A DNA stretch of 64,000 nt from the IMG/VR virus record IMGVR_UViG_3300030385_002649, positions 124,001 to 188,000 of that record. One strand, 5' to 3'. The notes below the pieces were generated by a model. The model saw nothing but the letters and a program-made list of their open reading frames with translations. It was not told where the DNA came from and did not search any database. Position numbers and translations under genes: made by a program. Positions 26,895 to 63,261 of this stretch are shown one piece after another (the first letter of the stretch is position 1; every line of letters begins with the position of its first letter).

Positions 26895-28544
26895 TTACTG
26901 TTGGGTTTGCGTATAAATGCTGTTCATAGCGCCCGCGAAGCGCAGCAAGTTCGCGCTCCAGCCTCCAAAGATGAAGGTCTTGTCGTAGAACTCAGGAACA
27001 ATGGTGTCACGGTATCCCGCGATTTGTACCAAGTAAACCATGACGTTCGGGTTGACCTTAGTACGGTAGTCCGCGATCAACTTTGGAACATCGACATATG
27101 CCATAGCGTGGTTCTTCTTGTTCATATAGGCGTAGTTTCCTAGGCCATTCTTGTTATAACCGTATAGCCCGCCATGACCGGCTTGCATGTCAGAGTAAAC
27201 GAACACGTGGTCCCAATGCTCCTTCTGCTTGATAGCCTTGTCCCAGAATACCCAAACGCCGTTCTCTGTGCCATTCCCGATTGTCCGAGCAGCTATTTCC
27301 GCTTCCTTTAGCTGATCGAAGATAGAAGAACGCTTACGGATTCTGTTTTCCTTCAACTTGTCACCGAAGACACCAAGGTAGCCCTCATCTGCCCTCATTC
27401 CAGTAATTACACCAGTAAGGTTTCCGATTGTAGAGATTTTCATCTCGCCAAGTTCAGAAGTAGAAGTGCCCTGAGCCGAGGCGCTGTTGTCACACAACGA
27501 CATAACACGACCCTTAAAGCGAGGCAAGTTGCCGAGCGATACGATCATGCATTCTTCGATAGCGTCAAGCAACGACGGATCCGCCATGTCCTGAATAGCC
27601 TTATAAGCGCTGTAATACCTGAAAGGAAGTTGCCTACCCTTGTCAGCGCCCTTTACCAACTTATCCTTATAAGTGTCCACAGAAACTCCATGCTTGATGA
27701 AGTTACGAAGGTTCCTAAGTAGAGCCATGTGACCCATAACCTTAGCCGACTCTTCCCAGGACTTCTGGTTAGAACCCTTTTCAGAAGTGATAGACTCCCA
27801 GGTCTTGCCAGTTGACTTCAAGTTACCCTTCATCAACTTATCGATAGCCTCGCTCTTAGCGTGCACCAAGTTGATGACGTCTACAGTCTTAACACCACGG
27901 TTTTCCAGGCGATACTTACCAAGTTGATACTCATCGTATCCTTCCAAAGAGTCCTTAAGAGCACGCTTCAAACGAGTAGGAATTGGCTTCCCAAAAGCAG
28001 ACAACTGATAAGCTAGACAGGTTGCCGGTTCATCCGCACGACGGATGATCTTCTTAGCATAAGCACGGATAAGGTTTGTTCCCTTAGAACCAGCATGGTT
28101 AGCTGCTCTAACTAGGATGACCTGAGGAGTAGCGCGAATGTTATCGCTGTTACGCAACGACACTGCTACTTGAAGAGTACGCTCAACATCAGCGTCTAGT
28201 GCCGAATCGATTACGCCCTCCATCAACTCCTTAGAAGTCTTGCCACGCCACTCTGGGGGATCGAGAGCCGTAAGAGAGCTACGAATGTGCTTAGCCTCTG
28301 CCGCTGCCAACGAGCTGATGCTAGTGTACTTCTGTCCGAAAGCGCCCACACTAGCTGCGGCCGCACGCTTGTTTCTTTTCTCGTCAGTTTCATGATAAAA
28401 CTTCGGCTCACCGAAGAAACACGAAGCCGCAGCGATGTGCAGACGGAGAAATGGATCATTGATGTCGTAAGATGGAGCACCCATTTCGTTCATATGCGCT
28501 CGTGCGCGGACCTTAGGCAGGGTCTTAGTGTTGATCTTGCTCAT
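26895..28544 (-). CDS. TROVE-domain (Ro60/Rsr, TEP1-like subgroup) RNA-binding protein with vWA domain
   Basis: NEMGAPSY, FFGEPKFY, IRRADE, DEYQLGKY, TWE, MGHMALLRNLRN, QLPFRYYSAY; vWA MIDAS-like DNSASA...T...SDMQ; strong RBS. Confidence 0.9.
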   Translation of the reverse strand: MSKINTKTLPKVRARAHMNEMGAPSYDINDPFLRLHIAAASCFFGEPKFYHETDEKRNKRAAAASVGAFGQKYTSISSLAAAEAKHIRSSLTALDPPEWRGKTSKELMEGVIDSALDADVERTLQVAVSLRNSDNIRATPQVILVRAANHAGSKGTNLIRAYAKKIIRRADEPATCLAYQLSAFGKPIPTRLKRALKDSLEGYDEYQLGKYRLENRGVKTVDVINLVHAKSEAIDKLMKGNLKSTGKTWESITSEKGSNQKSWEESAKVMGHMALLRNLRNFIKHGVSVDTYKDKLVKGADKGRQLPFRYYSAYKAIQDMADPSLLDAIEECMIVSLGNLPRFKGRVMSLCDNSASAQGTSTSELGEMKISTIGNLTGVITGMRADEGYLGVFGDKLKENRIRKRSSIFDQLKEAEIAARTIGNGTENGVWVFWDKAIKQKEHWDHVFVYSDMQAGHGGLYGYNKNGLGNYAYMNKKNHAMAYVDVPKLIADYRTKVNPNVMVYLVQIAGYRDTIVPEFYDKTFIFGGWSANLLRFAGAMNSIYTQTQQ

Positions 28545-39400: not shown

Positions 39401-39748
39401 ACCCTTGTAGTCACCTAAACAGATGTTCTCAACTAGATCCAAAAGGTTCTTTTTGAATTGTGTAGCTTTTTCCTCTTCAATAACCTGAATGGGACTAACG
39501 TTCTCAATTTTAACTCTTCCTTTACCAACCTGCTTGACATCAGCACGGTAATAAATCCCAGAGTCCACATCCTCATACATGAGGTGGTTTGTTTGTAGAG
39601 ATGTAAGTCTTAGATTCTGGCCAGCTTCTTTGCCAAGGCGAGAAACAGCCTCTTCAAAGTACCTGAGAGTAGCAGCCGCACCATTGTTGATCTCGCGCAC
39701 GAACTTACGTGCGTCCATAACGATTGGGGCCTTGTTATTTTGAGCCAT
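36428..39748 (-). CDS. Large acidic prohead/internal head protein (1106 aa)
   Basis: Between portal and protease; helical N-half, disordered G/S/D/E-rich C-half, many xxE-S sites; CAAAAATA upstream. Confidence 0.6.
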   Translation of the reverse strand: MAQNNKAPIVMDARKFVREINNGAAATLRYFEEAVSRLGKEAGQNLRLTSLQTNHLMYEDVDSGIYYRADVKQVGKGRVKIENVSPIQVIEEEKATQFKKNLLDLVENICLGDYKGADKTFSRIEGQRYRSSVVPSSGWITAKDGVSRQVNIASRKMDEDVVATISNLFCEAVSDNIVVQNGRIVEGTLFKEDPDFKLPVNESTKRKLIARKMRDIASEAYASTPFQSLVVETASLVCEGRIADACKLTAKFFKEEQEFSLLDKNYMRQLVENTLATRGEFNSMLTSDVSKLMYKVNAKYNRQDIIESWTKTAQRSQSADLMSKANLLAESDDFEQDYHKFLGHVFSEDRNNTVASMYKLALEYIQDRLPDQEDSDDSVIAKDKLGDIIDKLSRTEPDSYSLIQAEEIFHTINDNLTNNIDNLSNFDMEPGVETYDDQSGDGAGSELMSLPEVGQGDDLGMGDDMAMAGAGGPEMGGMGMPESAPTPGGVRIDEMSTSDLLEELESWRLNGDAYLSEDGYDDCYAQMEGYIKRCIELGPSTNIVRESFEGMRDRMVTGGDILEDVQGDSDPYSNSVSAAFNGPDSNLTSRNRRDPSSDPAFLEGKKPQSGRINPGYRHTYLESEQPYSQAHVPGGDMHASPDALRMDDIRGSGGISDKSARKSDGRSAGGSAAGQHAPQRGSGIQSKSLKSADGRKGEHSTSGSAGGDLRMDDQQGAGGVQSKSLSSSDGRKGKVGQSATPSESSVKPKAGGDPALAKGGFSSTGTSMGGDFQGRGGVEKKYAPHKADGASGDGASGAKKYTASGGPSDAGLDMSEFQGREGVEDDGCDSDGTKGQGKVGSDGGLKKAGKNGEMADLQGSGGVAESLTPENIASMIAEWEALEEGELPDFIKDKKKDGDSDDKSSKSCSCCDDEDAACKCAPGCDDCSCKPDGGDDDGGGNPFAKSEDQYKSASMKKSGLKKSSVNPMESMQRIADTIAEDVTAVVFKGDSGDVASAVDSVLNGGGGGDMDDMSPPELETDEGMLEPEEDSMDAGLEMGDDDDLEMGMEEPENEEDFEGELDSGLGLGEESDNPFAGDGDGDDDEEESSDFESDEESAEEEIASEG

Positions 39749-41746: not shown

Positions 41747-44700
41747 TTATCGCTTGAAGTACTTTAACACGTGTTTCTTAAAAGAAACACTATCGTTAGG
41801 TTTTCCGCTACTGGTATTTTTACCCAACGGGTGACTACCCAATTGAGATGCAAATCTAGCCACTTCACTAGTGGCATCAACCTTACCTACCCATCCTTCA
41901 GATGACAAATTTACAGGAGCCAACGCATCCCTACCACCTTTAATTAACAGAGCCCTATGCTTGTCAGGATGAATAACCGGTTCCAACATTCTACTAGAGA
42001 TGTCCATATTGTGCAGAGGGGCCAAATTGTACCCCTGTGTCAAAATCGCTTCAGGTATACCAATAAGAGCAAAACACGCGGCCAACACGAGGTCATCAGT
42101 GTTTCCAGTGCCTGGTTCGTTTCCATATCGACCACCACCAAGATGGATGAAGATACACAATTCTCTATAAAGCCTAGGCGACTTGATTGTCCATCCGTCG
42201 ATTCCAACATTATCTTTCAGACATTTTACGAGAATGTGCTTCGTGGTATTAGATGTTGGAAATCCGGTCTTGTTATACTTCATCTTAAGGTTAGTCGTCT
42301 GAGTCTTGTGGCGGTATAACGTTGGGTACATCAATTCGTACTCAAGTTCTTGGCACAACGTAGCACCAATGCCGGTCCTCTCAGGGACGATTAACGCATT
42401 ATTATACAACCTGCCAACATAATCAGCCATTCTAGCGAACATCTTAGGCAGAACTCTCATCCTAAGTTCTGCCACTTGTTCTTGAGTGTCTACATCGAAG
42501 ATTTCCAACGTAGAATAATCATCCGCTTCTCCTGTAGACGGGTCAGCGCCAACAATATAGAGGTGAGCGCGTTTAGCGTGTTCAGGCAACGAATCTAGTG
42601 TGCCATCACGGCGAGCCTTAGCCATTTCCCGGTCTGCATCAGCCTGAGTGAACGGTTCGTCCCAAATCCAAAATTGCTCCTGGAAATCAAGAACTGTGCG
42701 AACATCCTGAGAAGGATTTATGTATTCTACAGAATCTAGTACCTTATACTTGTCTCCGTACTCGGCAACCATTCTTTCTAATTCAAACAGCGCGTTACGG
42801 TTTAGAACAGTGTGACCAGAGCCTAAGAATTCAGCCAACACTTCTTGTCTAAAAGCGCTATCATCACCCTTAGTAGAGAGGTCGTCATATTGAGTTTCTA
42901 GCCATGGGCTCCAATAAGGGCCATATTTCTCAATGTCCTCTTTTTTCTCTAGTTTTTTCATTTCTCTTGTTGGAGAAATAACGGTTTTGTTACCAGAAAG
43001 CTCATCTACGAAGTCTAGGCTCCAGTCCATATTCCACCAGTTGATGAGAATAGGATTAAAATTATTTTCTTTATCAACAGCCGCTGACCAGGTCTTATAA
43101 TACCAGTTGCCAACACCCTTTGGAGTGCTAATAACAATACAAGAGCCACCCGTCTGCATAGTATTATGAGAGACAAAACCATTAGCAACATAAGTATTAT
43201 TGCCAGGAACACTAATGTCGACCGTAAAAGATTTAGATTTCACAACCGAAACAACCTCATCTATAAAAATCCCATCCTTCACAACATATTTAATAGGATC
43301 CCTCCGAGAAGCTACGCGAACTATGTCGCATTTTTTCCTTTCAGAAATAAACCCAATATCGCTCATAAATTTAATGCGGTTGTCAAGATTTAAAATCTCT
43401 AACCGATAAGATTCTTTACTATTTTCAAATCCTCCTTTTTTAATTGTTTTTCTAGAAATGATCCCTAAATTGAGGAGCATTACTTGAACTAGCCTGGCCA
43501 ATTTTTCAGAAATTGACGAAAACCCAATACTATAAATTATAGAATTGGGCCTATACTTATCATCATATTGATAACACCATCCATCAGCTTCGAACAGTCC
43601 TCTCAGAAACGCTTTATGAATCTTTTGGCTAGATTTCATAATCATCTCTGGTATAGTCGCATTATGCGCATGTGTTTTGCAATGAAAATGCTTTTCAAAC
43701 CACTTCACAAAAGGAGAACTATTAACCCTAAATTCCCCAGCGCCATTAGAAATCCTATCACTGTGATCTAAGCCAATTGAATTAAAGTAACTACCAAAGT
43801 GCCCTGAAACGTCAGAATCTTGAGGATCATAAGATAGCAAAAACCTATGCGGTCTCTTATTAACAATGCAGCCATCACCAACATAATAACCAATAAGTTC
43901 AGCAAGCCTTTCGTCCAATATCTTGGGCTTATTGAAGCCCTTACCCATCTTTAAAACCGGAGCGCAATCAAAACATATAAACTTATTGCTATTTCTTTTA
44001 AAATTGCGCTTATAAGTTCTATAATTCACAGAAACTGTTTTGCTACAATTAAAACAAATTGGGCTTACAGTATCAGCATTTTTTGCCTCAATAAAAAGAG
44101 TAGGGAACTGGTCGACATTATTGATATAAGTGTCAAATTCGACATCAAAATCAGAGCCGCACTTTAACGAAAGTTTCTGGCTAAGATCGACATCTTTAGA
44201 ATAGACCCATTCATATTGATCATCCTTAAGCCTATGATTGCCAGTGCATTCTATTTCATACCCCAGCTTAGTAGTTATAATGTTGGTAGAAGCAATGCCA
44301 TTTATATAAAACTTGTCAGAGTTCTTTATACAAAAGTCAGATTGTACCTCAACATCGATATCCTGCCATTGACCTCCATTTAAATCCCCTAAAGACCCTA
44401 TCTCCACCAAAGACCCTTCAGATGATATGAGAGAGTCTGGTCTTATGCATGAGAAGCCGCCCTTCCACATATCATCCATGTGTTGAATAAACGCGGCCTC
44501 ATCGATAATGTTTAGCGAAGAAGCGTTGGATCGGAGAGTGTCAGGGTTGGATGTTAGAGACCGAATCATCGATCCATTTTGGAAACCTAGGGAGTGCTCG
44601 TTCATAACGTCTGGTTTCCATAAGTCCTTCATCCACTTTGGAAGGTGCTTATAGACGAACTTGATGTTACGATCTAGGTAGTTCTTAGCGTCAGGGTCAG

Positions 44701-45439
44701 TACGCGATACGATGAGGACAGTCTTGTTGTTGAAGAACATCGCGTACCACAAAGCGAAAGCACCAGAAAGCGTGGAAATGCCAACCTGTCTACAATTATG
44801 AACGACTGAGCCGTCAACTATAAAATTGCTATGTGGAGGCACTTCTAAGTCGTACGTCTTAACTTTCTTGTGCGGTTTTATAGATAGGACTTGACCCTTT
44901 TCGCGATTGAAGAAGAAGCCCTTTTTTGTGGTGTCTTGGCATTTTGGCTCTTTTCCAAAAGTGCCGATTTCTGAATCATAAATTTCTACAAGCACATCAT
45001 TTTGTGTTAAATCTCCTACTTCGACCCAGCCTCTTCTTGTGAGATATTCATGATCGGCTGTAGCATACGATTTGTGACCAGTTTTTGTTCTAACCTCGAA
45101 TGTATCTTTCATACCATTTTCTAAAGTAGAAAGAACTGGGGCGGTCTCTACAGTTCCTGATTGCTCATTATATGTATAGACCAGATCTCCGATTTTAATG
45201 TTTTCGATATTTATGGGCCCTTTTGGAGTCCATACAGGGCTCCCTTCGGCCAGACACTTTCTGAAAATGTTAAAACGATGGGTTGTGAAGTCCTTTAGAC
45301 ATTTCTTCTGATAGCCGAACAACTTGAATTTAATGATTCCAAGCTTTGGATGCTTTACTTTACAAAAGTTGTTGATGAAGAACTCTGGGTCCTGTTGGCA
45401 TCTTTTGATGATTTTAGCTAGGGTTGGGTGTACAGCCAC
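41747..45439 (-). CDS. gp17: Terminase large subunit, T4 gp17-like, with two inteins
   Basis: F.LFGYQ, K|CRQVGIST Walker A, IIDEAAFI Walker B, VISTPKG, FRQEV.AEF, GADPSTG, DDLVLA. Confidence 0.96.
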   Translation of the reverse strand: MAVHPTLAKIIKRCQQDPEFFINNFCKVKHPKLGIIKFKLFGYQKKCLKDFTTHRFNIFRKCLAEGSPVWTPKGPINIENIKIGDLVYTYNEQSGTVETAPVLSTLENGMKDTFEVRTKTGHKSYATADHEYLTRRGWVEVGDLTQNDVLVEIYDSEIGTFGKEPKCQDTTKKGFFFNREKGQVLSIKPHKKVKTYDLEVPPHSNFIVDGSVVHNCRQVGISTLSGAFALWYAMFFNNKTVLIVSRTDPDAKNYLDRNIKFVYKHLPKWMKDLWKPDVMNEHSLGFQNGSMIRSLTSNPDTLRSNASSLNIIDEAAFIQHMDDMWKGGFSCIRPDSLISSEGSLVEIGSLGDLNGGQWQDIDVEVQSDFCIKNSDKFYINGIASTNIITTKLGYEIECTGNHRLKDDQYEWVYSKDVDLSQKLSLKCGSDFDVEFDTYINNVDQFPTLFIEAKNADTVSPICFNCSKTVSVNYRTYKRNFKRNSNKFICFDCAPVLKMGKGFNKPKILDERLAELIGYYVGDGCIVNKRPHRFLLSYDPQDSDVSGHFGSYFNSIGLDHSDRISNGAGEFRVNSSPFVKWFEKHFHCKTHAHNATIPEMIMKSSQKIHKAFLRGLFEADGWCYQYDDKYRPNSIIYSIGFSSISEKLARLVQVMLLNLGIISRKTIKKGGFENSKESYRLEILNLDNRIKFMSDIGFISERKKCDIVRVASRRDPIKYVVKDGIFIDEVVSVVKSKSFTVDISVPGNNTYVANGFVSHNTMQTGGSCIVISTPKGVGNWYYKTWSAAVDKENNFNPILINWWNMDWSLDFVDELSGNKTVISPTREMKKLEKKEDIEKYGPYWSPWLETQYDDLSTKGDDSAFRQEVLAEFLGSGHTVLNRNALFELERMVAEYGDKYKVLDSVEYINPSQDVRTVLDFQEQFWIWDEPFTQADADREMAKARRDGTLDSLPEHAKRAHLYIVGADPSTGEADDYSTLEIFDVDTQEQVAELRMRVLPKMFARMADYVGRLYNNALIVPERTGIGATLCQELEYELMYPTLYRHKTQTTNLKMKYNKTGFPTSNTTKHILVKCLKDNVGIDGWTIKSPRLYRELCIFIHLGGGRYGNEPGTGNTDDLVLAACFALIGIPEAILTQGYNLAPLHNMDISSRMLEPVIHPDKHRALLIKGGRDALAPVNLSSEGWVGKVDATSEVARFASQLGSHPLGKNTSSGKPNDSVSFKKHVLKYFKR
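43163..44449 (-). mobile_element. Intein (429 aa) with LAGLIDADG homing endonuclease in terminase
   Basis: CIRPDSLI start, IECTGNH, LAELIGYYVGDG and FLRGLFEADG, TVDISV..NTYVANGFVSHN|T end. Confidence 0.93.
44795..45256 (-). mobile_element. Mini-intein (154 aa) in terminase Walker A
   Basis: CLAEGSPV start, ATADH, TYDLEV..HSNFIVDGSVVHN|C end; too short for an endonuclease. Confidence 0.93.
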
Positions 45440-52477: not shown

Positions 52478-52783
52478 ATGAGTTTAACTGCTGAGCCTAT
52501 GATCAATGAAGAAGAAGTTGTCGAGCCTAAAGACCGCGATGTCGAGTTGGTAGATGATTTCGAAGACGAGTCAGGCAACGTCCAACTAAGCCTAGAAGAC
52601 TTGACTGGCATGATGTTAAGTCACCCTTCTGTAAAACAAGCTATGGTCATCCTGATTTCCGATGACCACGACGTAGTAGAGTTTAAGGGACACTTCTATG
52701 ACAATGCTGCCCTTTTGTCAGGGATTATGAAAGACTACAAAGCCAAGATCTACTCAGAAATCTTCTCAGACAGAGAAGACTAA
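52478..52783 (+). CDS. Small acidic hypothetical protein
   Basis: GAGG RBS, 101 aa. Confidence 0.55.
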   Translation: MSLTAEPMINEEEVVEPKDRDVELVDDFEDESGNVQLSLEDLTGMMLSHPSVKQAMVILISDDHDVVEFKGHFYDNAALLSGIMKDYKAKIYSEIFSDRED

Positions 52784-54426
52784 GTCTTAGGCTTATCGCC
52801 GTAGATTTTAATCTGCAGGTCACCCAAAGTAATCAGTTCGTCGAAACCAACCTGATTGTCAGGAGCGGTTATAGAGCCTTCGCTAGATTGAAGGATGTCG
52901 TCCACTGGTTCCTTGATATTGATATACTTAACGCCATCTAGCGACTGCAACAAATCGTTGAGTTGCGACAAGTATAATGGCTGGCCAAGATCGAAACTGG
53001 ACTGGCTAAAGAACTCATCGACAGCCACGTTCACTCGGTCTCTAATCAACGATGGATCATAGCTGCGATCAACAATCACATTAGCTTTAAATGTGATAGG
53101 CTTGATCGCAGCGTCCACAACTCTAACTTCATCAGTCAGAACATTAATATCTTCCAAAGAAGACTGCAGGGCTTGCTTGAGACCAAGGCTTGACAGCACT
53201 GGGATGTCATCCGGCCCAGCGGCCAAAATGTGAGTAAACACAATATTAGCATTTAGGGATGTCTTGACAGTCGCCACCGATTTTAGGACGCTACCAAACA
53301 CTGGGTGAGAGAATTCTCTCGAAAGAATAGCATAGTCTTCACCACTAGTCGCGGACCCTAGAGTTGCTGATTCTTTAGGCGCTCTAACCTTAGCTTCTTG
53401 AATTGTTTCCTTGTTGGTTCCGCCGTTAGAAGCGGACGGATTTCTAAACAAGACCTCCACAGCCGCCGAAGCTGGAGCCTCAGGGGTGATCGGCCTAGTC
53501 TCGTTGATGGTCTTTGGAGAGATCCGTCCTCTGACGCCGCCCCCGAACCTATAATTGAGATTTCCAATTTGTCCGGCTAGCAACGCTTTCCCGGCTTTAT
53601 CGTCTCCGAATCTGACAGTCATCCTGTCTTCTGAGAATCTTACTTCGAAGACCTCATCATTAGGACCTGATTTCTCAAGAGTGTCGACTTTTTTCCATCT
53701 AGTGGTCTGAGCACCAGTTTGGACGTCGAGAGTGATTGGGTCACTGAGGATGGTCGTACCGAGCACTTCTACTGACTGATTTGGCCCTCCTGCCGATTCG
53801 AACACGAATGGCGTGGCAAATTGGCCTTCGATGCCAAACCCGATGATCCCTCGTGATCCCGGAAATATCGAAATCGGGCTAGTAAAGTCATTGGGCGCTC
53901 TGAACAGCTCGTAGATCAGAGGGTTGCCGTCTGCGCCGAGGATATTAAACCTTACGCCAGACGGGATGTTTACTGTGGTAGCGACTTCCGAGCCTAGAGA
54001 CACTTCAATATCAACGACAGCTGGAGTCTGCCTTTGGAATTCGTTGTTGATAAGTTCTAGGTGTTGACTGACTGCTGTTTCTGTTTGTGCGGTTGGCAAG
54101 AACGCCTCATCCGCTATAATATCGCTTCTTTGGGACAACAAGTCGGCCAGATAACTAACAAGTTCAACGAGCATGATGACGCCGTTGCTGCTAATAAAAT
54201 CGTTGAATAATTCTGGGAAGTAAGTTCTGATATATTCAATTAACGCTCGACGCATCTCTTCGAACTCTAGAGCGCTAAAATCGATTCTTCTAAGGTTAGG
54301 CGGATCTAGAACAACGCCGAACTCGTCTGGATCAATTGGAAGATTGAAGAACGTGTTGACAGGCGCTGTGTTCCCACTTGGAACTCTTACAGTTTCTTGT
54401 GTAGTAATGCTGCTAGCCATTATCAA
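52780..54426 (-). CDS. gp6: Baseplate wedge protein, T4 gp6 / Baseplate J-like
   Basis: IDFSALEFEE.R..LI.YI, NDF..S..G.MLVEL, EAFL.TA, VRFGDD..G, GG...ETI.E.K..AP, EDY. Confidence 0.9.
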   Translation of the reverse strand: MIMASSITTQETVRVPSGNTAPVNTFFNLPIDPDEFGVVLDPPNLRRIDFSALEFEEMRRALIEYIRTYFPELFNDFISSNGVIMLVELVSYLADLLSQRSDIIADEAFLPTAQTETAVSQHLELINNEFQRQTPAVVDIEVSLGSEVATTVNIPSGVRFNILGADGNPLIYELFRAPNDFTSPISIFPGSRGIIGFGIEGQFATPFVFESAGGPNQSVEVLGTTILSDPITLDVQTGAQTTRWKKVDTLEKSGPNDEVFEVRFSEDRMTVRFGDDKAGKALLAGQIGNLNYRFGGGVRGRISPKTINETRPITPEAPASAAVEVLFRNPSASNGGTNKETIQEAKVRAPKESATLGSATSGEDYAILSREFSHPVFGSVLKSVATVKTSLNANIVFTHILAAGPDDIPVLSSLGLKQALQSSLEDINVLTDEVRVVDAAIKPITFKANVIVDRSYDPSLIRDRVNVAVDEFFSQSSFDLGQPLYLSQLNDLLQSLDGVKYINIKEPVDDILQSSEGSITAPDNQVGFDELITLGDLQIKIYGDKPKT

Positions 54427-54847
54427 CTCCTAATGATCTAATTGGTGTAGAACCAAAGTTTCCCTTCGGAGCCACAAATTCAGCTTCAATCGGGAACACA
54501 GTTCGATTTGGGTCGCTCCTAAGATAAACTAGGACAGTAACTGTCATGTTGTTAGAGTCTGGATTAGAGTTAATGATGACATCCCTTACCCCTACTCTAG
54601 ACTCACTGGTCTCTATTGCTTGAAAGACCTGATTTCTCAAGTTTCCCGCCGTGAAACTATCATCCGGCTCGAACGGAGTGGTCCGAATGGGCGTGCCAAA
54701 GTTTGGACGCATCACTCTTTCCTTTAACCCAGTCAATAAAAGCTGCAAAATATCGTTCTTTATCAGTCTAATATCCGTCTGGGGAGGCAGAACTTCCGAT
54801 TCTGTAAGAAAAGGTGGGTTGAACCCGAACCATTGTGTAATTCTCAT
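54413..54847 (-). CDS. gp25: Baseplate protein gp25-like
   Basis: IKNDILQLLLT..KERVMRPNFGT......FEP, E.RV. Confidence 0.9.
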   Translation of the reverse strand: MRITQWFGFNPPFLTESEVLPPQTDIRLIKNDILQLLLTGLKERVMRPNFGTPIRTTPFEPDDSFTAGNLRNQVFQAIETSESRVGVRDVIINSNPDSNNMTVTVLVYLRSDPNRTVFPIEAEFVAPKGNFGSTPIRSLGVDNG

Positions 54848-55578
54848 CGTACAAACTCCGAGACGCGCCTGATAGACTCCGTGATGCTCTTCAGATCGTC
54901 ACGGATGGCGTTGCGATCCGAAATAAGTTGTTCACGGTCCGTCTCAAGAACTACCAAAGTCTCTAACAACTTCTGATAAATCTCGTTTGGATCTGTTAGG
55001 TCTCCGTCGCTGATTCCAAAGACGGTCCGCGTTGCTTTGATAGCCTTGTTAGTCTCGTTAATCTTTTTCTGATTCTCAACAATCGATGTTTCAAGGTCGC
55101 TGGCTTCAGTGTTTTTCTGATTGAACTCGCCTTCTAATTCAACTTGTTTATCTTCCGATCCTTCGACTAAGGAGTTAATTTCATCCTCGTCTAAACCCAA
55201 AGATTCAAGATCCAAGATGTTAGTGTTGTGTTGGATATCTAACGACTTTGGAGATTGTAATGGCAGGATTTCTTGTTCTGGCGGGTTAACGTCGAACGTC
55301 AATGTTTCACCTAGCTCAAATTGCTTGATATTAGAACCTGGGTTCGACCTACTGTTTTTGGTTACAGTATAAACAAGCTCTCCGAACTGTTCCCTACGTT
55401 CTCTATCAGTAAAAACACGTTCTGGATTTGGTTGCAGTTCTTCCGCTACTGGCAATTGTGTCAATCTAACAGGAGACCTTGGAGGATCTTCTGTAGAAAT
55501 CAACCAAGTAATATCTCCTGATTGGGTGCCGGTTGGGATTACCGGCTTATACAATCCAGTTGGAAAACGTATGATCAT
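54844..55578 (-). CDS. Hypothetical baseplate-region protein with C-terminal coiled coil
   Basis: Between gp5 and gp25. Confidence 0.55.
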   Translation of the reverse strand: MIIRFPTGLYKPVIPTGTQSGDITWLISTEDPPRSPVRLTQLPVAEELQPNPERVFTDRERREQFGELVYTVTKNSRSNPGSNIKQFELGETLTFDVNPPEQEILPLQSPKSLDIQHNTNILDLESLGLDEDEINSLVEGSEDKQVELEGEFNQKNTEASDLETSIVENQKKINETNKAIKATRTVFGISDGDLTDPNEIYQKLLETLVVLETDREQLISDRNAIRDDLKSITESIRRVSEFVR

Positions 55579-55587
55579 TCTTTATTT

Positions 55588-58185
55588 TTAAACGCCGGGG
55601 AATAGAGGAGGTGTAGTGAATTCGGCAGTTCCTATCTCAAACAATTCAATATTTCCATTAAATTCAAGATCCTCACTATAAGACAATACAGTGTCATCCC
55701 CTTCTACTGGTAATAACAGATCTGGGTTAGTGACGTTTCGGATTCTATAAATCGCTGCTACGTCACCGTATCTTCTCTGAGACAATACCGCTTGTTGGTT
55801 GCCGCGTGCCGTTTCTAGAGTTTTAGACAACCTTATTTCTGTAGCATCAACATTAGGAGGAAGGTTCAAAAGGTTAGCAAAAGAGTCTAGCTGCAACCCA
55901 AATTCTTCGATTTCAGCCTTAAACTTGTTCGAAACTCCAAACCAAAGCACTCCTCCTCCGCCTGGGTTAGCATCCTCAATCGGATCGATTGGTGGCGCTG
56001 GGATCGGAGGAACTGGTGCGCCTGGGCCATCCGGTGCGTTCGGAGATGGATCTGGTGGGTTCGAAGGCGTTTGGCCTCCGCCACCGCCTCCTCCGCCGCC
56101 GCCCGGAGGACTAATAATAACTTCGGTAGGAACATCGCCCTTCTGATCCTTAACATCGTCGCACCCGCGCTCTTTGTCAAAATCATCAGGCTTCTTACGA
56201 GTGATCTCCTTTTCTTTTGGCTTACATGGGTTGCCGGGCTTGGTCGCGTTGGCTCCTGCGCCTGAGCCTGCGAAAGCTCCGCCAGGTTGGTACGCGCAAC
56301 CCATTTGAGGGTGGAACCCCTCTAGCCTTGCGCCTTGAATGGTTTTGGATGTTCCGATTCCGCTAGCATCGATTTTATGAGTAGCCCCGTTAGTCGACAT
56401 CTCAATAGTTTTAGAAGTTAGACCGATTTGGCCTTTCTCCGCTTTTAGGCAGATGTCGCCATCGTCAGATATTAATTCAATACTCTTTTTAGCTCTGATT
56501 TGGATCTTGCCGATTTCATTTCTCAGGACGATAACGTCATCGTTATCATCAAGAAGGAGCCATTTAGCGCCTTTCTTGCCTCGGAGAACAGTGAAGTTGT
56601 CTTTGGCGGAGAACCACAAGGCCCTATTTTCACGATCCCTAGTCTCAACCCATTCTCCGCATGGAGCGTCTTGATCGCGCATCTCGATGCCAGCGCCCTC
56701 TGGAGTCTTCAATCTGACCATACAATTCTTCTTATCAAGAATCAAATGATACGTGTTGCTGGCGGGGTCGTGACGTTGACCACTGCTCTGAGTATAAATT
56801 GACTTAGTTCTCTCCATACTCTTAAGAGATTTAGGGTTAGGCTCTGTGTGAAGTTCGCCAGCGGATTGAGTCGCCATCATGCAATAATCGAAACGATCAT
56901 TTAATTCGAAAACTTGATCCTTTGGTGTAACAAAAAGCATGTGATCGAGTTCTGTCTTATCAACAGCTTGAATTGCAAATCCCTTACGCGTTCTGAGTAA
57001 CCACCCATTTCCATGAGGCGTGGCTTTACCTTCAGCGTCAATTGGATCAGAGCCTCTGTCATCTAGAATTAAAGTGTTACCATGACGTGTCTGGAGACGG
57101 ATCATCCGGCGATCTTCACCAAGTTCTTCTTCCTCGTCCATCTCCTCGCCGAATTCAGATTTGTTCAATCTCTTATAGAAGAGGTCTTTCTCAGCGTCGA
57201 AGCCAACATCCAGCATTTGGAATAAATGGCCGCCCTTACTCCGAATCTTAATCCAACGCTCGTCTCGATCTTTTGAATCTCCGATAGTCTTAACTGGGCC
57301 GTATTCTCCTGCTCTAGACTTATCCCAACCGACGTCTCGCATTTCCATCATGTGGCCAGCGCGAGTTCTGATTTCGATTCTTCTTTGGTCTCTTTCTTTG
57401 GCTTCTTGTTCGTTAAAGGCTTTTAGAAGGTATTTGTATCTGTCTACTTCAAAGTCTTTATCGTCTTCGAAGTTTCCTTTAAATTCTTCAAACCATTTAT
57501 AACCTTGGTCTCCCATGAAGAAATAATTGCCATATTTCGAACCCATAGTCACGTACTTGGTGTCAGGCTCGTTGTCTTTGGGTTGTGCTTCTGAGGCGTT
57601 GAAGGCTGACTTGGATAATGCATCAGTACCGACCGGGGCTGGTTTTACCTTGTGTTGCTTAGGAGAGAACCCAACAGAATTGAAATTGAACCAGTTGCCA
57701 TAACGATCACTAAATCCTGTGCTCTGTGGCCTACCGTCCTTTGGGAGATAGTCCTCTTCAAAGTCTTGAGGAGTTTCTGCTGGGGTTCCATCTTCTTTTA
57801 CAGCTTGCGGCGAGCGAGTATAAGTACTCCATAGGGAGTAAGACCTTCTTCTGGTCGGGTCGGCTGCCGCTGTCCAGATCGGTCCGTATGCATGATTCTT
57901 TTCGAAATTGATGAAGATGATATCGTCAATTTCTGGGTGCGTCCAGGACCCTGCGTTTCTACCGCCCATCCAAGGAGCCGGAACGGCCCAAGGAAGGTCT
58001 TCTGTTTTGACGTTGCTATCATGCAACTCTGGCATGCGAAATCTTACGCGTCTAAAGTTTAGAGGATCGTTAGTCTCTACGACTTCAGCGCGCCACCAGC
58101 CTGGGAATCGCTTCCACAGATCGTTGTTTCTGATTTCTTTGAATTTTCTAAAGGTTTTGAAGTTATTGTTTTCTAATTCACGCAT
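55588..58185 (-). CDS. gp5: Baseplate central spike gp5/VgrG-like with C-terminal extension
   Basis: OB fold RAEVVETNDPL...RVRFR.PELH..LPWA.P; beta repeats (IRTRAGH.MEM.D); Pro/Gly linker and an extra domain; no lysozyme motif seen. Confidence 0.85.
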   Translation of the reverse strand: MRELENNNFKTFRKFKEIRNNDLWKRFPGWWRAEVVETNDPLNFRRVRFRMPELHDSNVKTEDLPWAVPAPWMGGRNAGSWTHPEIDDIIFINFEKNHAYGPIWTAAADPTRRRSYSLWSTYTRSPQAVKEDGTPAETPQDFEEDYLPKDGRPQSTGFSDRYGNWFNFNSVGFSPKQHKVKPAPVGTDALSKSAFNASEAQPKDNEPDTKYVTMGSKYGNYFFMGDQGYKWFEEFKGNFEDDKDFEVDRYKYLLKAFNEQEAKERDQRRIEIRTRAGHMMEMRDVGWDKSRAGEYGPVKTIGDSKDRDERWIKIRSKGGHLFQMLDVGFDAEKDLFYKRLNKSEFGEEMDEEEELGEDRRMIRLQTRHGNTLILDDRGSDPIDAEGKATPHGNGWLLRTRKGFAIQAVDKTELDHMLFVTPKDQVFELNDRFDYCMMATQSAGELHTEPNPKSLKSMERTKSIYTQSSGQRHDPASNTYHLILDKKNCMVRLKTPEGAGIEMRDQDAPCGEWVETRDRENRALWFSAKDNFTVLRGKKGAKWLLLDDNDDVIVLRNEIGKIQIRAKKSIELISDDGDICLKAEKGQIGLTSKTIEMSTNGATHKIDASGIGTSKTIQGARLEGFHPQMGCAYQPGGAFAGSGAGANATKPGNPCKPKEKEITRKKPDDFDKERGCDDVKDQKGDVPTEVIISPPGGGGGGGGGGQTPSNPPDPSPNAPDGPGAPVPPIPAPPIDPIEDANPGGGGVLWFGVSNKFKAEIEEFGLQLDSFANLLNLPPNVDATEIRLSKTLETARGNQQAVLSQRRYGDVAAIYRIRNVTNPDLLLPVEGDDTVLSYSEDLEFNGNIELFEIGTAEFTTPPLFPGV

Positions 58186-58505
58186 TACAACTCAGCAAAG
58201 ACTACTGACGGTATTGGAAATTCAACTACTTGATTGTTTGTAGGCCAATTTAGAGGATTCTGCACATTGTTGAAAATGACTGCTATCCACATTAAGTCTA
58301 CATTACCATAAATTTCGTCTGCCAATAAATCAGGACGACCGGCCAGGTCCGGATTAATTACTATTTGTCCTATTTCGTCGCTTTTTAAATTATCTCTGCT
58401 TAAAAAGTCGTACTTTGTTGCAATACCATAAGTTTCACGACCATCCCGCGATAGGATTGGTACCGAATCAGAAAATCTCGAATTTGCTCTTGGGTCTACA
58501 GGCAT
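58185..58505 (-). CDS. Baseplate wedge gp53-like (LysM-type) protein
   Basis: GRPDLLADEIYG..LMWI...FN....P. Confidence 0.8.
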   Translation of the reverse strand: MPVDPRANSRFSDSVPILSRDGRETYGIATKYDFLSRDNLKSDEIGQIVINPDLAGRPDLLADEIYGNVDLMWIAVIFNNVQNPLNWPTNNQVVEFPIPSVVFAEL

Positions 58506-59120: not shown

Positions 59121-62026
59121 GATACCCAGTCCTTCATAGCTTCACCAGAACCCTGCTGCAATCTGCGGGATCTTCTTTCTTTAGGCTTAGGTTTTTTCTG
59201 GTGAACGTGCATTTGTTCAAGGGCGTCGGCTGTACGAGCGTTGTCAGGGTCTCGTTTCTCAACAAGTTCCTTCATGTGGGCAGCCATAGTGCCAAGTCTG
59301 TTTAGCATTCTGATATCCCTATCACTAGCGGTATCTTTTCCAAACTGTACTGTATAAACCGGGACAGCGTCTTTCTTGTCACGCTTCTTATCTTTAGCAT
59401 AAGTGACGCTGCGGGCTTTAGACTCAACCCCGATCTTGTCTTGTAAGCTCGGCTTTGAGAAACGCTCCATTAGCGCTTTTTGTCCTACTTGATTTACTCC
59501 AATTTTTTCTTTTTGTCCGGCGATGCGCAATTTAGCCCTAGCGGCTGCAGCTTTTCTTTCATCATCGCTCATGCCATCGGCGCGTTTAGGTTTCAAACCG
59601 CCTTCCTTCTGTCCGCTCCACCAGTCACTAATTTTTTGCATTCCTTCGATAATGAGTCCAATTGGGTTCAATATCGCGAACAAGATCTTCTTAAAGGTTG
59701 CTAGTGGCCCAGAAGCTTTCTTAATTCCTTTAGAAACACCAAACATATCATCTTTAGAATCAGTCAAGCCAAATGCCGATGCGATTTTTTTCACAACAAA
59801 CCATACTGCAGCAAGCGGCGGAGACAACATCGATAACAACGAACCGACAGGCCCAAGAGCGGTTGCTATCTTAACAAAGACCCCAAGAACTGATCCGGCA
59901 ACCTTAAAGACTGTTTTGATAGCAGGAATAATCGTCTTTTTCATCATTGGACGCATAGACTTAAACCACGCGGCCAAGTCTTTAGCTAGAGGAGCTACAG
60001 CTTCTGCGATTACCGGCATGATTTCGCCCATCAGCTGATTCCATGACTGGGTGAGAGTGGCCATTGACTTATCGTAAGATTCTTTTTGTGTAGCTTCTTT
60101 CTGTTTACTGACGAGCATGCTTTGCATCATCGCTTCTCGCTCAGCACCTACCAGGCCCTTCAATTTAGTTTTATAAAGGTTTTGCATGTCTTCATTGATA
60201 CCAAAACGTTTGTACATTCTTTGTTGGATCAGTGCCCCTGCGCCTTCGAAATCTTGCATGACTTTCATTGCGCCTCTAAGCCCTCCTTCTAAGATCTTAG
60301 TCTGATCTCCGTCTACCTTAAATGCTTCATTCAGAGCGCCGCCATAGGCTAACAGCATGACCGTACTAGAACTAGTAAGGTCATTCATGTTTTCAACGAA
60401 TTCTAGTACTCCATCCAAGTCGACTTTAGCTTCACGAGCGGCCCCGGCCAATCCGGCGACGGCCCCGGCGTATTCCTTAGGCTTAGTAGAAGAGAACAAA
60501 GCGCGTTGCTTTTTCAAGCTCTTTGTCAATGTGTTAGTTACTTTATCTAATTGAGCGCCAGACAGCCCGTAAGCTTCTGAAGCCCCAGTAAGCATGCCCA
60601 AAATGGCGGACTGTTTTTCTCCCGTTACGCCAAGTTGGTTCAATTGCATTTGATACTCAGCTGTTGCAGCCGAGCTTGCGCCAGTGGTATGAGCGAACAT
60701 GATGTTCTGTCTACTCAATTCTTTTAGGGCGTCTTGACCTTTGAGCATCTCTCCATTAGCCATCTTGACAGCATCGCCCATACCCTTCACACCAAGACCT
60801 GCAGCCCCGAGCGCATGGACGGCGGCCCTCGCCTTTTCTCCAGTAACTCCTAGTTCGCCAGACAACCTGAATGTAGAACTAGACAATTCCTCAATAGATC
60901 CATTGGTCCGATGAGCGGATTCTCTATAATTCTCCATCATATCAACATTCATCTGGAGTCCTTTCATAACTCCAGCTAACACAACCAATATGATAGCAGC
61001 CGCCGCTACAAATGCCGCCGCCGCCGCTCCTGCTGCTACTCCGCCCGCTGCTCCAAAAGCACTCATAGCAGATGAAGCGCCTTGGGCGCCTCTAGTCGCT
61101 CCACCAAGAGACTTAGTCATATTTCCAATCCCAGAGGCCGCCCCTTTAGTGCTACCCGCAGTGGTTTTTAAAGCCTTGTTCATCTTTCCGGAGATTTTTA
61201 GGTCCTTACCTCTAGCGCCGCCCAGTTTCTTAGTAACTTTCAAAAGATTTTGCGTGTTTTTGATGGAATTGATGTCTATACCATCACCGTCGGACATCCC
61301 TCCTTTTTTGCCCATCGCTGCGAATTTACCGCTTAATTGGCTAGCAGCAGAGTCTAATGCTCCTGATGACTTGCGCGCCATCAGTTCAGCTAGATTCTGT
61401 TTAGCTTTGTCAACAACTGGATTGACAAATGGTTTGATGAATGCGTCGAACCCCCTTTTCATAAGGGCGAAGCCTTCATTGGCTTCTGTAGACCCCATTT
61501 TTAGTGATCCAAACAATCCGTCGAAACCAGTTTTTGCTTTTTGCGTCTTCTCGTTTATCTTAGCGAGGTTTTGTTCATAAGCGCCATAGGTTTGAGAAAC
61601 CCTAGAAACTCCATCTCTAAGGTCGCCATACTGTTTAACTTGCTCCTCGGTGAGAATGTTATCTTCACGGTGACGCTTCAATAAATCGTCAATAGACGTT
61701 CCCAACTGACCGTACTGCTTCATTTGGTCTGCAGTGATGTCAGAAAGACTAGTCTGGCCGTCAGCAGCTGCTCTAACAGCTTTAGCATAATGGTCATATG
61801 TATATTGATTATTCAGAACGGCTTTTTGGTTCGCATCAAGGCCAGCCGCATAACTCATGTTAGCTCTACCTAGCACTTCAAAGGCGCTCACATTACCAGC
61901 GTAGACTTTTTGAGCCTGCCGCATAGTGTCTGTGGCTGAAGTTATAGAGGACTTAACTTTATCGAATCCAGTCGAAGTAGCGGCAAACACCACTTCAGCC
62001 ATCATGTTTCGTTTTTTCTTAGCCAT
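59117..62026 (-). CDS. Tape measure protein
   Basis: 969 aa, A/G/K/M-rich helical with hydrophobic segments, upstream of baseplate genes. Confidence 0.8.
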   Translation of the reverse strand: MAKKKRNMMAEVVFAATSTGFDKVKSSITSATDTMRQAQKVYAGNVSAFEVLGRANMSYAAGLDANQKAVLNNQYTYDHYAKAVRAAADGQTSLSDITADQMKQYGQLGTSIDDLLKRHREDNILTEEQVKQYGDLRDGVSRVSQTYGAYEQNLAKINEKTQKAKTGFDGLFGSLKMGSTEANEGFALMKRGFDAFIKPFVNPVVDKAKQNLAELMARKSSGALDSAASQLSGKFAAMGKKGGMSDGDGIDINSIKNTQNLLKVTKKLGGARGKDLKISGKMNKALKTTAGSTKGAASGIGNMTKSLGGATRGAQGASSAMSAFGAAGGVAAGAAAAAFVAAAAIILVVLAGVMKGLQMNVDMMENYRESAHRTNGSIEELSSSTFRLSGELGVTGEKARAAVHALGAAGLGVKGMGDAVKMANGEMLKGQDALKELSRQNIMFAHTTGASSAATAEYQMQLNQLGVTGEKQSAILGMLTGASEAYGLSGAQLDKVTNTLTKSLKKQRALFSSTKPKEYAGAVAGLAGAAREAKVDLDGVLEFVENMNDLTSSSTVMLLAYGGALNEAFKVDGDQTKILEGGLRGAMKVMQDFEGAGALIQQRMYKRFGINEDMQNLYKTKLKGLVGAEREAMMQSMLVSKQKEATQKESYDKSMATLTQSWNQLMGEIMPVIAEAVAPLAKDLAAWFKSMRPMMKKTIIPAIKTVFKVAGSVLGVFVKIATALGPVGSLLSMLSPPLAAVWFVVKKIASAFGLTDSKDDMFGVSKGIKKASGPLATFKKILFAILNPIGLIIEGMQKISDWWSGQKEGGLKPKRADGMSDDERKAAAARAKLRIAGQKEKIGVNQVGQKALMERFSKPSLQDKIGVESKARSVTYAKDKKRDKKDAVPVYTVQFGKDTASDRDIRMLNRLGTMAAHMKELVEKRDPDNARTADALEQMHVHQKKPKPKERRSRRLQQGSGEAMKDWVS

Positions 62027-63261
62027 TAAACTATTTGCGCCTTAGCATTATAATCGTAACGATACAAATAAAGATCGGTGTACCAGCTGTCAGTTTCCAT
62101 TCTATGGTTGAACCCATTGACTAGCCATTTTCCGCTTAAGAAAAAGTTTTCGTCGTCCAAGTCCTTCCATTCTAGATTTATATAGCCAACCCCTAACTTA
62201 GTTGGATCATCAAACCGATGGTCTCCCAACACGCTAATTCTCATAGCCATAACCATAGGGAGCATATTCAAGTACATGTTTCTAGCTCGTCCGTCTATCC
62301 ATTCATCATATTTCATGCCTATTTCACCAGCACTAAATTCAGGGATAGCAACTATAGATGTGGAGTATTCAGAATCAGACTTTGCAAACCCTCTTTTCTG
62401 ATCGATGCCAACGTTCACTTTTTCGCTTGTGTTTAAGTCTTTTACAACCGTATTCTTAGGATCGGTCTTTTTGTCGATGAATTTACCAGATACGGTTGAA
62501 ATGCCCTGCGTTACAACTTGATTTTGCAGAGCGGTAATATAAGTCGATGATAACATATTCCAGTCTTTAACATCGTTTTTCCCTTTCCCAAACGATGTTG
62601 TATAACATGCTAATAGCTCTGGTTTTAGATCATGTTGCTGCTTGATGACCAATTTTCTGTCAACACTGAAAGTCATCCAGTTCGTTTTTTTCTGCCTAGA
62701 CAGAGATGAGGACCATTCTAACAATGATTGGATAAAAGTTCTAGGATCCTGGCGCATCATGCCCCATTTCCCCTTATCATTATCATCAGTCTTCGTGATT
62801 TCTAGCTTAATCTGGCCTCCAGTGTATTCTTTAACAACTTGAGTTATAACATCGCTAACATTACCGGTATAGACTTTCCCGCTACTGTCGCCAGCATTTA
62901 AAAACCAAGTGGGCGGATCGATCGCAACGAACTCGAACATCCCCTCTGCTGGAGGGCCGAACACGTCCAAGTCGGTGATAAAGGCTACGCGCCTTTTGGC
63001 GACGCTCTTTGGGTTTCCAGCCCAAAATAGTTGAAATGTTACGGGGGTCGGTTCTTTCCGCGCGCTTTGTAGGAAGCTTCCGATTACTCCCGCTTTCTTT
63101 AAAATAGTGAAGTACGGGTCGTACATCCTAGCCTTTAAGACGTATCCGCCGTTTACAGTCGCTTTCCATTCCAATTGTTCAATCGATTTGATCCCTATTT
63201 CAGCGCTAGCTCCGATTGTCATCTTGCACGCTGGTGCCATTGAAATGGTGCGTTCGGACAT
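62026..63261 (-). CDS. Baseplate hub protein (gp27/gpD-like)
   Basis: VSDVI..V, Q....FI..L, ISVLGD, FLSGKWLVNGFNH. Confidence 0.65.
   Translation of the reverse strand: MSERTISMAPACKMTIGASAEIGIKSIEQLEWKATVNGGYVLKARMYDPYFTILKKAGVIGSFLQSARKEPTPVTFQLFWAGNPKSVAKRRVAFITDLDVFGPPAEGMFEFVAIDPPTWFLNAGDSSGKVYTGNVSDVITQVVKEYTGGQIKLEITKTDDNDKGKWGMMRQDPRTFIQSLLEWSSSLSRQKKTNWMTFSVDRKLVIKQQHDLKPELLACYTTSFGKGKNDVKDWNMLSSTYITALQNQVVTQGISTVSGKFIDKKTDPKNTVVKDLNTSEKVNVGIDQKRGFAKSDSEYSTSIVAIPEFSAGEIGMKYDEWIDGRARNMYLNMLPMVMAMRISVLGDHRFDDPTKLGVGYINLEWKDLDDENFFLSGKWLVNGFNHRMETDSWYTDLYLYRYDYNAKAQIV

Follow-up and report, generated by a model that had tools for sequence, protein, structure and literature searches.

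The window analysed here is a 64,000-nucleotide stretch, bases 124001-188000 of IMG/VR virus record IMGVR_UViG_3300030385_002649, a 370,804-bp record with direct terminal repeats that is estimated to be complete. An open reading frame (ORF) on its minus strand, at positions 55588-58185, encodes the 865-residue gp5/VgrG-type central spike of a contractile machinery. The C-terminal domain (CTD) of this protein is predicted to adopt the fold of the ADP-ribosyltransferases (ARTs) and to resemble the NAD+-binding lobe of Tpt1/KptA. The reading that we favour, with a probability of roughly one half, is that the spike of a T4-like jumbo phage gained this tethered domain once, and that the CTD is a pseudo-enzyme that is delivered with the spike and acts by binding. 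It is probably a spike-borne binding module and not an active toxin.

A central spike with a tethered C-terminal domain

The spike reading frame is intact and without interruption under genetic code table 11, which was used throughout. Its product combines a PF04717 OB fold, C-terminal beta repeats and a place in a baseplate gene cluster, as expected of a gp5/VgrG-type central spike (the protein being modelled as a monomer). The PHROG match, to family 430 ('baseplate hub subunit and tail lysozyme'), covers the N-terminal part alone, NCBIfam VgrG_rel matches residues 25-99 weakly, and homologues of the spike carry matches to PF10106/DUF2345. The full-length AlphaFold2 (AF2) model, based on a 64-sequence alignment, has a mean predicted local distance difference test (pLDDT) score of 75.7, with regular pairs of five-residue strands at residues ~269-612 (pLDDT up to 94), low confidence at residues 629-646 and 696-731, and a confident terminal domain. 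Searched with Foldseek, this model matches the contractile injection system (CIS) spikes of Algoriphagus (AlgoCIS) and Anabaena and the central spike of phiKZ with probabilities of 0.99-1.00, and also the P1 baseplate; its last domain matches Tpt1. The proposal of the initial annotation, which had seen in this gene a gp5/VgrG-type spike with a Gly/Pro tether, is thus borne out by the OB fold, the baseplate neighbours, the matches of the model and the disorder of the linker.

The linker opens at residue 693 (window position 56109) with two prolines and ten glycines, followed by a Pro-rich stretch that includes PPIPAPPIDP, and the segment L747-V865 (119 residues) holds the motifs LWFGVS, IEEFGLQ, IRLSKT, RRYG and AIYRI. 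The linker and domain strings picked out in the initial annotation are all present at the positions it gave, and those of the domain are conserved motifs of a family of 42 members, not chance resemblances. These 42 are the CTD-bearing proteins among 120 listed of 209 spike homologues, and they underlie the family counts and the CTD profile given here. Where the linkers of homologues could be delimited they span 48-79 residues with 30-59% Gly plus Pro, and the sole conserved sequence is DPI[ED] at their end. An imperfect GGN trinucleotide tandem at window positions 56074-56103 encodes the run of ten glycines; since Gly-run and linker lengths vary widely among homologues, the sequence suggests that this tract is subject to replication slippage. 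The CTD itself is acidic (median pI 4.4, net charge about -9), whereas the KptA C-lobe has a pI of 8.7, and it contains a 12-residue family-specific insertion with an invariant asparagine, N32, that Tpt1/KptA lacks.

Fold of the C-terminal domain

To judge from its predicted structure, the CTD has an ART fold that is closest to the NAD+-binding lobe of Tpt1/KptA. Modelled alone from the 42-sequence alignment, it gave a mean pLDDT of 93.7 and a predicted template modelling (pTM) score of 0.86, and the model shows the split beta-sheet core, with helices after the first two strands, of the ART superfamily. In a VIA-align search of 48,161 representative chains the best match was the C-lobe of Thermococcus KptA (TkoKptA; 9ld3_A), with Z = 10.3 and an rmsd of 2.2 Å over 87 residues (model 3-111 to chain 91-180). 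The next matches were Arr, pertussis toxin S1, EcPltA, TreX, mouse and Runella Tpt1, DarT, Scabin, CARDS toxin, LT, PARPs and diphtheria toxin, and nearly all of the top 50 (Z from 10.3 down to 4.5) belong to the ART superfamily. With Foldseek against the PDB, all top five matches were Tpt1 (E 3e-3, probability 1.00); a search of BFVD found small phage proteins, some of them annotated as RNA 2'-phosphotransferase, DarT or ART, and a search of the ESM Atlas found a PF01885 cluster together with unannotated viral clusters. Model and searches together match Tpt1/KptA, Arr, pertussis and cholera-type A subunits, DarT, PARPs and further members of the ART superfamily almost exclusively. The ART-like domain of the initial annotation is upheld by these results, and the unrelated fold that it had named as counter-evidence was not seen. 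A prediction of the CTD as a homotrimer (three copies) scored 0.00, which is no answer and counts neither for nor against trimerisation.

Tpt1/KptA (PF01885; PDB 9ld3, 6e3a, 8tg3, 7kw9) is the best structural match, and the six strands and three helices of its NAD+ lobe recur in the CTD model in the same order. The two also have in common h-h-x-G-[TS], F, I, GL, h-x-L-[SA], A, and [RK]-x-G followed by a hydrophobic strand. The CTD is nevertheless not a Tpt1, because it departs from that family in architecture, catalytic tetrad, HGT motif and family thresholds alike. Of the two Tpt1 lobes the C-lobe alone aligns: the N-terminal winged-helix RNA lobe is absent and the Gly/Pro linker lies directly upstream. 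Three residues of the Tpt1 Arg-His-Arg-Arg tetrad belong to the missing RNA lobe and the position of the fourth is Ala in 31 of 42 CTDs, while the HGT motif reads [YF]-G-[TLVI], with Gly alone conserved. The domain is acidic where Tpt1 is basic, and it falls below all Pfam and NCBIfam thresholds. A Tpt1-like role in RNA repair was considered and rejected, as both the RNA lobe and the tetrad are missing.

Sequence relationship to Tpt1/KptA

For comparison at the sequence level, E. coli kptA was taken from the annotated K-12 record, and KptA was also aligned to PDB chains for residue mapping. Aligned by hhalign, the CTD profile matched KptA with E 1.6e-4 (CTD 6-55 on KptA 101-138) and, in a permissive run against five KptA sequences, with E 2.8e-4 (CTD 2-80 on KptA 97-156). 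The probability of these matches is a modest 41-51%, and the Tpt1 profile was shallow, a KptA search of genome contigs having yielded eight close relatives. The first CTD motifs fall on HGT...I...GL...VHLS...A of E. coli KptA; in this register W-F-G lies on Y-H-G, F/Y10 on H105, A42 on R125, position 46 on H129 and R66-Y67-G68 on R143-H144-G145. The pairing of LW[F]G with LY[H]G made in the initial annotation is therefore reproduced by profile alignment.

Searches of Pfam (all 42 CTDs, E <= 1), PHROGs, NCBIfam and, by profile, PDB sequences gave no match to the CTD, so its family assignment rests on the fold and on hhalign. BLASTP of the CTD against KptA found just a spurious five-residue match, and the PF01885 (Tpt1) model found nothing in the 371-kb genome. 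The CTD constitutes a new, unannotated domain family, with no Pfam, PHROG or NCBIfam model. Outside spikes its profile weakly matched two proteins, P0136 and P0134 (E 9e-5 and 1.8e-4), each over the whole domain. P0134 is a standalone protein of 145 residues. P0136 is a metagenomic polyvalent protein of 2220 residues in which NUDIX, ART-PolyVal and DarA_C domains are followed by two tandem Tpt1-like, His-bearing repeats (residues ~1600-1715 and ~1928-2045); it matches the PF01885 and NCBIfam Tpt1 models just under threshold. The modest hhalign match between CTD and KptA is corroborated by the agreement of the fold and by these two bridging proteins.

Loss and retention of active-site residues

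The roles of Tpt1 residues and their contacts to NAD+ and RNA were taken from PMC6333775 and PMC10622864, and the corresponding CTD positions are listed in Table 1. The initial annotation had noted that Phe replaces the His of motif 1 and had asked whether homologues retain it: position 10 is Phe here and Tyr in 30, Phe in 12 and His in none of the 42 CTDs. Since all outgroups keep His at this position, loss of the motif-1 His is derived; at the position of R75 they have V, Q, R or T. A change from Tyr to Phe occurred at least three times on the clade tree, and the Tyr hydroxyl is thus dispensable. None of the ART active-site triads (H-H-h, H-Y-[EDQ] or R-S-E) is found in the family. The acid-rich loop before the equivalent of the ART-Glu strand has no invariant acid, with Asn and Thr here in place of the Asp of the family consensus, and in this phage the candidate catalytic positions are occupied throughout by F, R, N and T.

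In the alignments with Tpt1, the side-chain positions at the nicotinamide-riboside end and the tetrad Arg are lost or unconserved, while F16, I20 and G24 on the adenosine side, along with G11 and R66, are retained. The suspicion that the domain is 'possibly inactive' is strengthened accordingly at the level of sequence, no homologue having the His and other Tpt1 catalytic positions being lost too. Invariant in the 42 CTDs are G11, G24, N32, A54, Y67 and R75, and E108 is invariant or nearly so; N32, Y67, R75 and E108 may form either a remodelled ligand site or fold-stabilising contacts.

These observations bear directly on the alternative of catalysis, in which the CTD would be an ART or NADase that uses NAD+ through a non-canonical site and would be injected with the spike to modify a host target, or to deplete or alter NAD+, at the onset of infection. 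The confidently predicted ART fold speaks for such an enzyme, as do the invariance of G11, whose backbone binds the nicotinamide amide in Tpt1, the retention of R/K66 and the (near) invariance of R75 and E108. Virion-borne ARTs are common in myoviruses (PMC9503650), and a Macro-domain protein is encoded in the same genome. Yet motif 1 is never His or Arg, its Tyr and Phe have been exchanged at least three times as if the hydroxyl were superfluous, the second motif position is hypervariable (Pro in 13 of the 42), no acid is invariant where ARTs have their catalytic Glu, and the His-bearing outgroups mark the losses as derived. Moreover, a spike that halts in the periplasm, as would be expected from T4 gp5, would meet little NAD+. 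We therefore consider an active enzyme unlikely; were it one, the protein would be a phage counterpart of the ART-bearing evolved VgrG or of the head-packaged Alt of T4.

Distribution and evolution of the module

A word-index search found the 209 homologous spikes, all of them metagenomic and on contigs of up to about 371 kb; of the 120 listed, 42 have the CTD. The remaining ones are 670-760 residues long and end at a conserved ...V.E.VI.G motif that corresponds to residue ~692 here, and for this reason linker and CTD are to be seen as an addition to an already complete spike. In a tree of the core (residues 1-690) the CTD bearers form a single clade in which 42 of 43 tips have the domain; the lone exception is 697 residues long, has a linker-like end and looks truncated. 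Pairwise identity of the CTD follows that of the core (r = 0.87, slope 0.86), with means of 44% and 50%, respectively. Because CTD identity tracks core identity and the bearers make up one clade, the sequences indicate that the module was gained once and has been inherited vertically under purifying selection; it does not behave as a shuffled tip domain. When the profile of the 42 CTDs was run against 1.84 billion representative proteins, 21 matched, and the strong matches were all spikes or spike fragments. The CTD is encoded at 14 IMG/VR loci, where complete ORFs have ~860-930 residues and the CTD is always C-terminal, and the clade of its bearers consists of uncultured T4-like phages with contigs of up to about 395 kb.

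Gene order is alike around spikes with and without the CTD, and a protein of ~235 residues occupies the place of the neighbouring 244-residue gene in both. Comparison of synteny found no CTD-specific partner gene; as the surroundings are the same with and without the domain, no partner gene accompanies the module. The 244-residue coiled-coil neighbour was considered as an immunity or chaperone partner and rejected, because it also adjoins CTD-less spikes. In one IMG/VR relative, on a 33.8-kb contig (L013:101-3399), the spike is split into a 742-residue ORF with an Ala/Glu/Lys-rich end and a 355-residue ORF that begins 2 nt later in another frame. The latter holds an Ala/Glu/Lys-rich continuation, an ERGC-like motif, a Gly/Pro linker and a CTD (CLWYGTT). 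The cause may be a frameshift or an error of assembly, or the two genes may be real.

The tight co-divergence of CTD and core is relevant to two further explanations. The domain may serve within the virion, as an aid to folding or registration of the trimeric helix, as a plug or latch of the baseplate hub or as a substitute for a PAAR-type tip, without any host-directed function. A CTD that evolves at the rate of the core and in step with it would fit such a role, no PAAR-motif gene was detected in the genome, and the invariant R75 and E108, on the third and last strands of the model, would be neighbours in the Tpt1 sheet order and could form a salt bridge. However, a disordered, sequence-variable tether of 48-79 residues would hardly hold a rigid helix in register or cap it, and CTD-less relatives with the same neighbour genes build their spikes without the domain; a structural or assembly role is an alternative to be taken seriously but not one that we expect to hold. 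A peptidase S74-type intramolecular chaperone was rejected, the fold being that of an ART and Pfam giving no match. The second explanation is a host-surface binding module, in which three tethered CTDs would reach out from under the baseplate and bind an envelope component to position or trigger the spike. A long flexible tether and threefold copies are typical of binders that rely on avidity, and in the monomer model the domain lies exposed at the end of the chain. Receptor-binding domains, though, usually diversify fast and swap lineages, whereas the CTD co-diverges with the core and no exchange was seen. We know of no ART-fold receptor-binding protein of a phage, and the spikes of known myoviruses lie hidden within the baseplate until contraction. 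Surface binding is accordingly a poor candidate.

Comparison with known systems

The spike is, by analogy of architecture, like an evolved VgrG. In both, a homologous OB-fold and beta-helix spike is extended past the helix by a linker and a folded ART-type domain on the same polypeptide, probably in three copies per spike and so placed that the spike could take them into its target. A known example is VgrG1 of the Aeromonas hydrophila type VI secretion system (T6SS), which carries a C-terminal VIP-2 ART domain (PMC13577199). The CTD differs from that domain in belonging to the Tpt1-like branch and not the VIP-2/R-S-E branch, and in lacking the catalytic residues. The context differs also: the gene lies in a phage baseplate cluster, in a genome with a gp23-type capsid protein, portal and terminase and not in a T6SS locus, and the spike has no gp27-like N-terminal part.

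With T4 gp5, whose tip is formed by the PAAR protein gp5.4, the spike shares the N-terminal OB fold, the C-terminal beta repeats, the gene order gp53 / spike / ... / gp6 and a gp23-type capsid in the genome. It differs in having no lysozyme domain between OB fold and helix, and in the extra tethered domain after the helix, which is absent from T4 gp5. Models PF00959 (T4-type lysozyme) and PF05488 (PAAR) matched nothing in the 371-kb genome, though divergent versions could escape them; as neither a lysozyme nor a PAAR gene was detected, the spike is not a T4 gp5 proper. The suggestion that the ART-fold domain stands 'in place of lysozyme' holds loosely, insofar as no lysozyme domain is detectable in the spike and no PF00959 match in the genome. 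It fails as to position, since the lysozyme of T4 gp5 lies upstream of the helix and is not C-terminal.

Beyond spikes, the nearest relatives of the CTD are P0134, the P0136 repeats and small standalone ART-like phage proteins found in BFVD (for example those of Barnyard, phage G (gp251) and PBS1). The P0134/P0136 relatives have CTD-like features, namely the insertion-bearing layout and K-[HF]-G-G, with V-P-D in the first P0136 repeat, and polyvalent proteins are predicted to be virion-borne and to enter the host early, as proposed here for the CTD. Unlike the CTD, these relatives have retained the motif-1 His (LLHGTS, YHGTS) and carry an aromatic residue at the second motif; R75 is missing from most of them and none is on a spike. 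Conserved non-catalytic ART folds have a precedent in PARP13/ZAP, whose catalytic domain has the ART fold with the motif-1 His changed to Tyr and is regarded as inactive. PDB entry 4x52 was among the VIA-align matches (Z 6.1), but this is a eukaryotic PARP-clade domain with no specific kinship to the CTD.

Type VI secretion offers familiar examples of contractile-injection spikes with a covalently attached effector. For phages, surveys of viral NAD+/ADP-ribose systems and of jumbo phages report polyvalent proteins and ARTs that are packaged in the head (PMC9503650 among them), and the papers searched place virion-borne NAD+/ADP-ribose enzymes in the head and not on the spike. An ART on a spike or baseplate is not mentioned in two comprehensive surveys, one of viral ART systems and one of jumbo phages, and a full-text literature search for a phage central-spike or baseplate ART matched T6SS papers alone. 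What is new here is an unannotated ART-fold family fixed on a phage spike; effector-bearing T6SS spikes and head-packaged phage ARTs were known.

Genome context and features of the window

Among the gene products are a gp23-family major capsid protein, a portal, a large terminase and a ribonucleotide reductase, and there is a baseplate block in the style of T4; the source is therefore a distant, uncultured T4-like jumbo myovirus. A tape-measure-like gene lies upstream of the spike gene, the baseplate gene order is retained in relatives, and the CTD-bearing relative P0042 has a gp53-like gene at the same position. Coordinates within the window and residue comparisons are given in Table 1.

At window positions 56270-56320 (residues ~623-640), right after the beta repeats, most homologues, CTD-less ones included, have His-x-x-(x)-Gly-Cys or His-Arg-Gly followed by a Gly-rich stretch. 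This motif recalls the metal-binding apex of the P2 gpV and phi92 gp138 spikes, to which it may correspond.

Table 1. Features of the spike gene and its neighbours (window positions) and CTD positions equivalent to Tpt1 ligand-contacting residues (occurrence among the 42 CTDs)
Feature	Position	Strand	Residue here	Basis or occurrence
Central spike gene, gp5/VgrG type, 865 aa (P0001)	55588..58185	-		Intact ORF; Phage_base_V; PHROG 430; full-length model matches
OB-fold domain, residues 32-106	57868..58092	-		PF04717 (Phage_base_V), E 1.4e-9, 38.6 bits vs cut-off 23.8
Beta-hairpin repeat region, presumed triple beta-helix of the trimer, residues 269-612	56350..57381	-		AF2; Foldseek; PF10106/DUF2345 of homologues
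Conserved post-helix segment, residues 613-692; H-x-x-x-G-C, then KP.DFD.ERGC..K..KG.VP..V	56110..56349	-		Common to CTD-less homologues, which stop here
Gly/Pro-rich disordered linker, residues 693-743, including Gly10 run	55957..56109	-		pLDDT <50 at residues 696-731
C-terminal ART-fold domain (CTD), Tpt1/KptA NAD+-lobe-like, residues 744-865, 122 aa	55591..55956	-		AF2; VIA-align; Foldseek; hhalign
Motif 1 V-L-W-F-G-V-S, residues 746-752, equivalent to Tpt1 L-Y-H-G-T	55930..55950	-	F749 for His	Profile alignments
R-R-Y-G, residues 804-807, equivalent to Tpt1 R-[HR]-G holding NAD+ phosphates	55765..55776	-		hhalign with low mact and outgroup alignment; R805 column R32/K9, Y806 42/42; Tpt1 contacts from PMC6333775, PMC10622864
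R814 (CTD position 75), invariant Arg specific to the spike-borne family	55744..55746	-	Arg	42/42
Upstream neighbour, gp53-like baseplate wedge protein	58185..58505	-		PF11246; PHROG 232/7145
Downstream neighbour, 244 aa, coiled-coil C-terminus	54844..55578	-		No family match
gp25-like baseplate wedge protein	54413..54847	-		PF04965, E 9e-14
gp6/Baseplate_J-like wedge protein	52780..54426	-		PF04865; PHROG 219
HGT His (Cth H101 / Eco H105): adenosine 2'-OH, nicotinamide packing	CTD 10		Phe	Tyr 30, Phe 12, His 0 of 42
HGT Gly: nicotinamide amide (backbone)	CTD 11 (G750)		Gly	42/42
HGT Thr: ribose O2'/O3'	CTD 12		Val	T20, L12, V8, I2
Cth F107: ribose and adenine contact	CTD 16		Phe	40/42
Cth I111: adenine stacking	CTD 20		Ile	I32, V9
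Cth G115: adenine N6	CTD 24		Gly	42/42
Tetrad Arg (Cth R121 / Eco R125): NAD+ phosphates, RNA 3'-PO4	CTD 42		Ala	Ala 31, Arg 0 of 42
VHLS His (Pho H119): NMN ribose, nicotinamide	CTD 46		Arg	P13, H9, Q6, R3, E3, others
Pho T130: nicotinamide packing	CTD 53		Thr	Variable
Cth R139: phosphate	CTD 66		Arg	R32, K9
Cth R140/H: phosphate	CTD 67		Tyr	42/42

Several other genes of this phage are of note in their own right. The large terminase ORF (1230 aa; window 41747-45439, minus strand) has Intein_splicing matches in two stretches and Hint-type and LAGLIDADG_3 matches between its terminase segments, so that one or two inteins, with a homing endonuclease, probably interrupt it. In a UvrD/REP-type helicase of 965 aa (11834-14731, minus strand), an Intein_splicing/Hint insertion (residues ~237-580) separates the N-terminal helicase domain from the C-terminal one. 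A 549-aa ORF (26895-28544, minus strand) contains a TROVE (Ro60-like) domain, which is unusual for a phage and hints at the handling of non-coding RNA, and an 870-aa protein (6546-9158, minus strand) is a fusion of a methyltransferase, a family 2 glycosyltransferase, TPR repeats and a family 9 (heptosyltransferase-like) glycosyltransferase. In or beside the structural module, ORFs of 1106, 411 and 645 aa (36428-39748, 62026-63261 and 3698-5635, all on the minus strand) have no Pfam match, and the first two have no PHROG match either. The Macro-domain protein is encoded outside the window (G000:C1:331579-331929, minus strand; locus L005) and scores 56 bits, above the cut-off; its presence gives the phage at least one further component of an NAD+/ADP-ribose network.

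Proposed function of the spike-borne domain

We propose that three CTDs would hang from each trimeric spike and enter the host envelope with it at tail contraction, in the way that evolved VgrG proteins carry in their C-terminal domains. Once there, the CTD, as a pseudo-enzyme and not an active ART, NADase or Tpt1, may bind a host ligand or one of nucleotide type, possibly a molecule containing adenosine or ADP-ribose. Several considerations weigh against this reading. Some ART-fold enzymes work with non-canonical residues, so that loss of H/H/R is no proof of inactivity, and N32, Y67, R75 and E108 could make up an unrecognised active site. The conserved F16, I20, G11 and G24 may be purely structural, and the strong acidity of the domain disfavours binding of an anionic nucleotide. 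A conserved segment of 80 residues separates the beta repeats from the linker, so that the chain may exit elsewhere than at the tip, where the initial annotation had placed the domain, and the CTD could be cleaved off during assembly. When 50,697 cultured and deposited phage genomes were searched by tblastn, neither the complete spike nor the CTD had a match, and no cultured relative was thus found.

A more specific version of the binding role, which we hold to be improbable as stated, would make the CTD a pre-loaded counter-defence module. Arriving with the spike as it penetrates, ahead of all phage gene expression, it would bind and sequester an NAD+-derived or ADP-ribose molecule, such as an NAD+-based abortive-infection signal, or block a host ART or NADase defence protein. 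If so, it would be the first spike-borne immune 'sponge' or decoy.

Whatever its ligand, an ART-fold domain is here fixed on the very first protein to touch the host interior, and the new family links spikes to the Tpt1-like repeats of polyvalent phage proteins. Because the domain appears to be kept under purifying selection without the canonical catalytic residues, its clade offers a clean natural case for the role of a non-catalytic ART fold. Should the CTD bind an NAD+-derived ligand or a defence protein, the concept of the injected anti-defence factor would reach to the tail tip.

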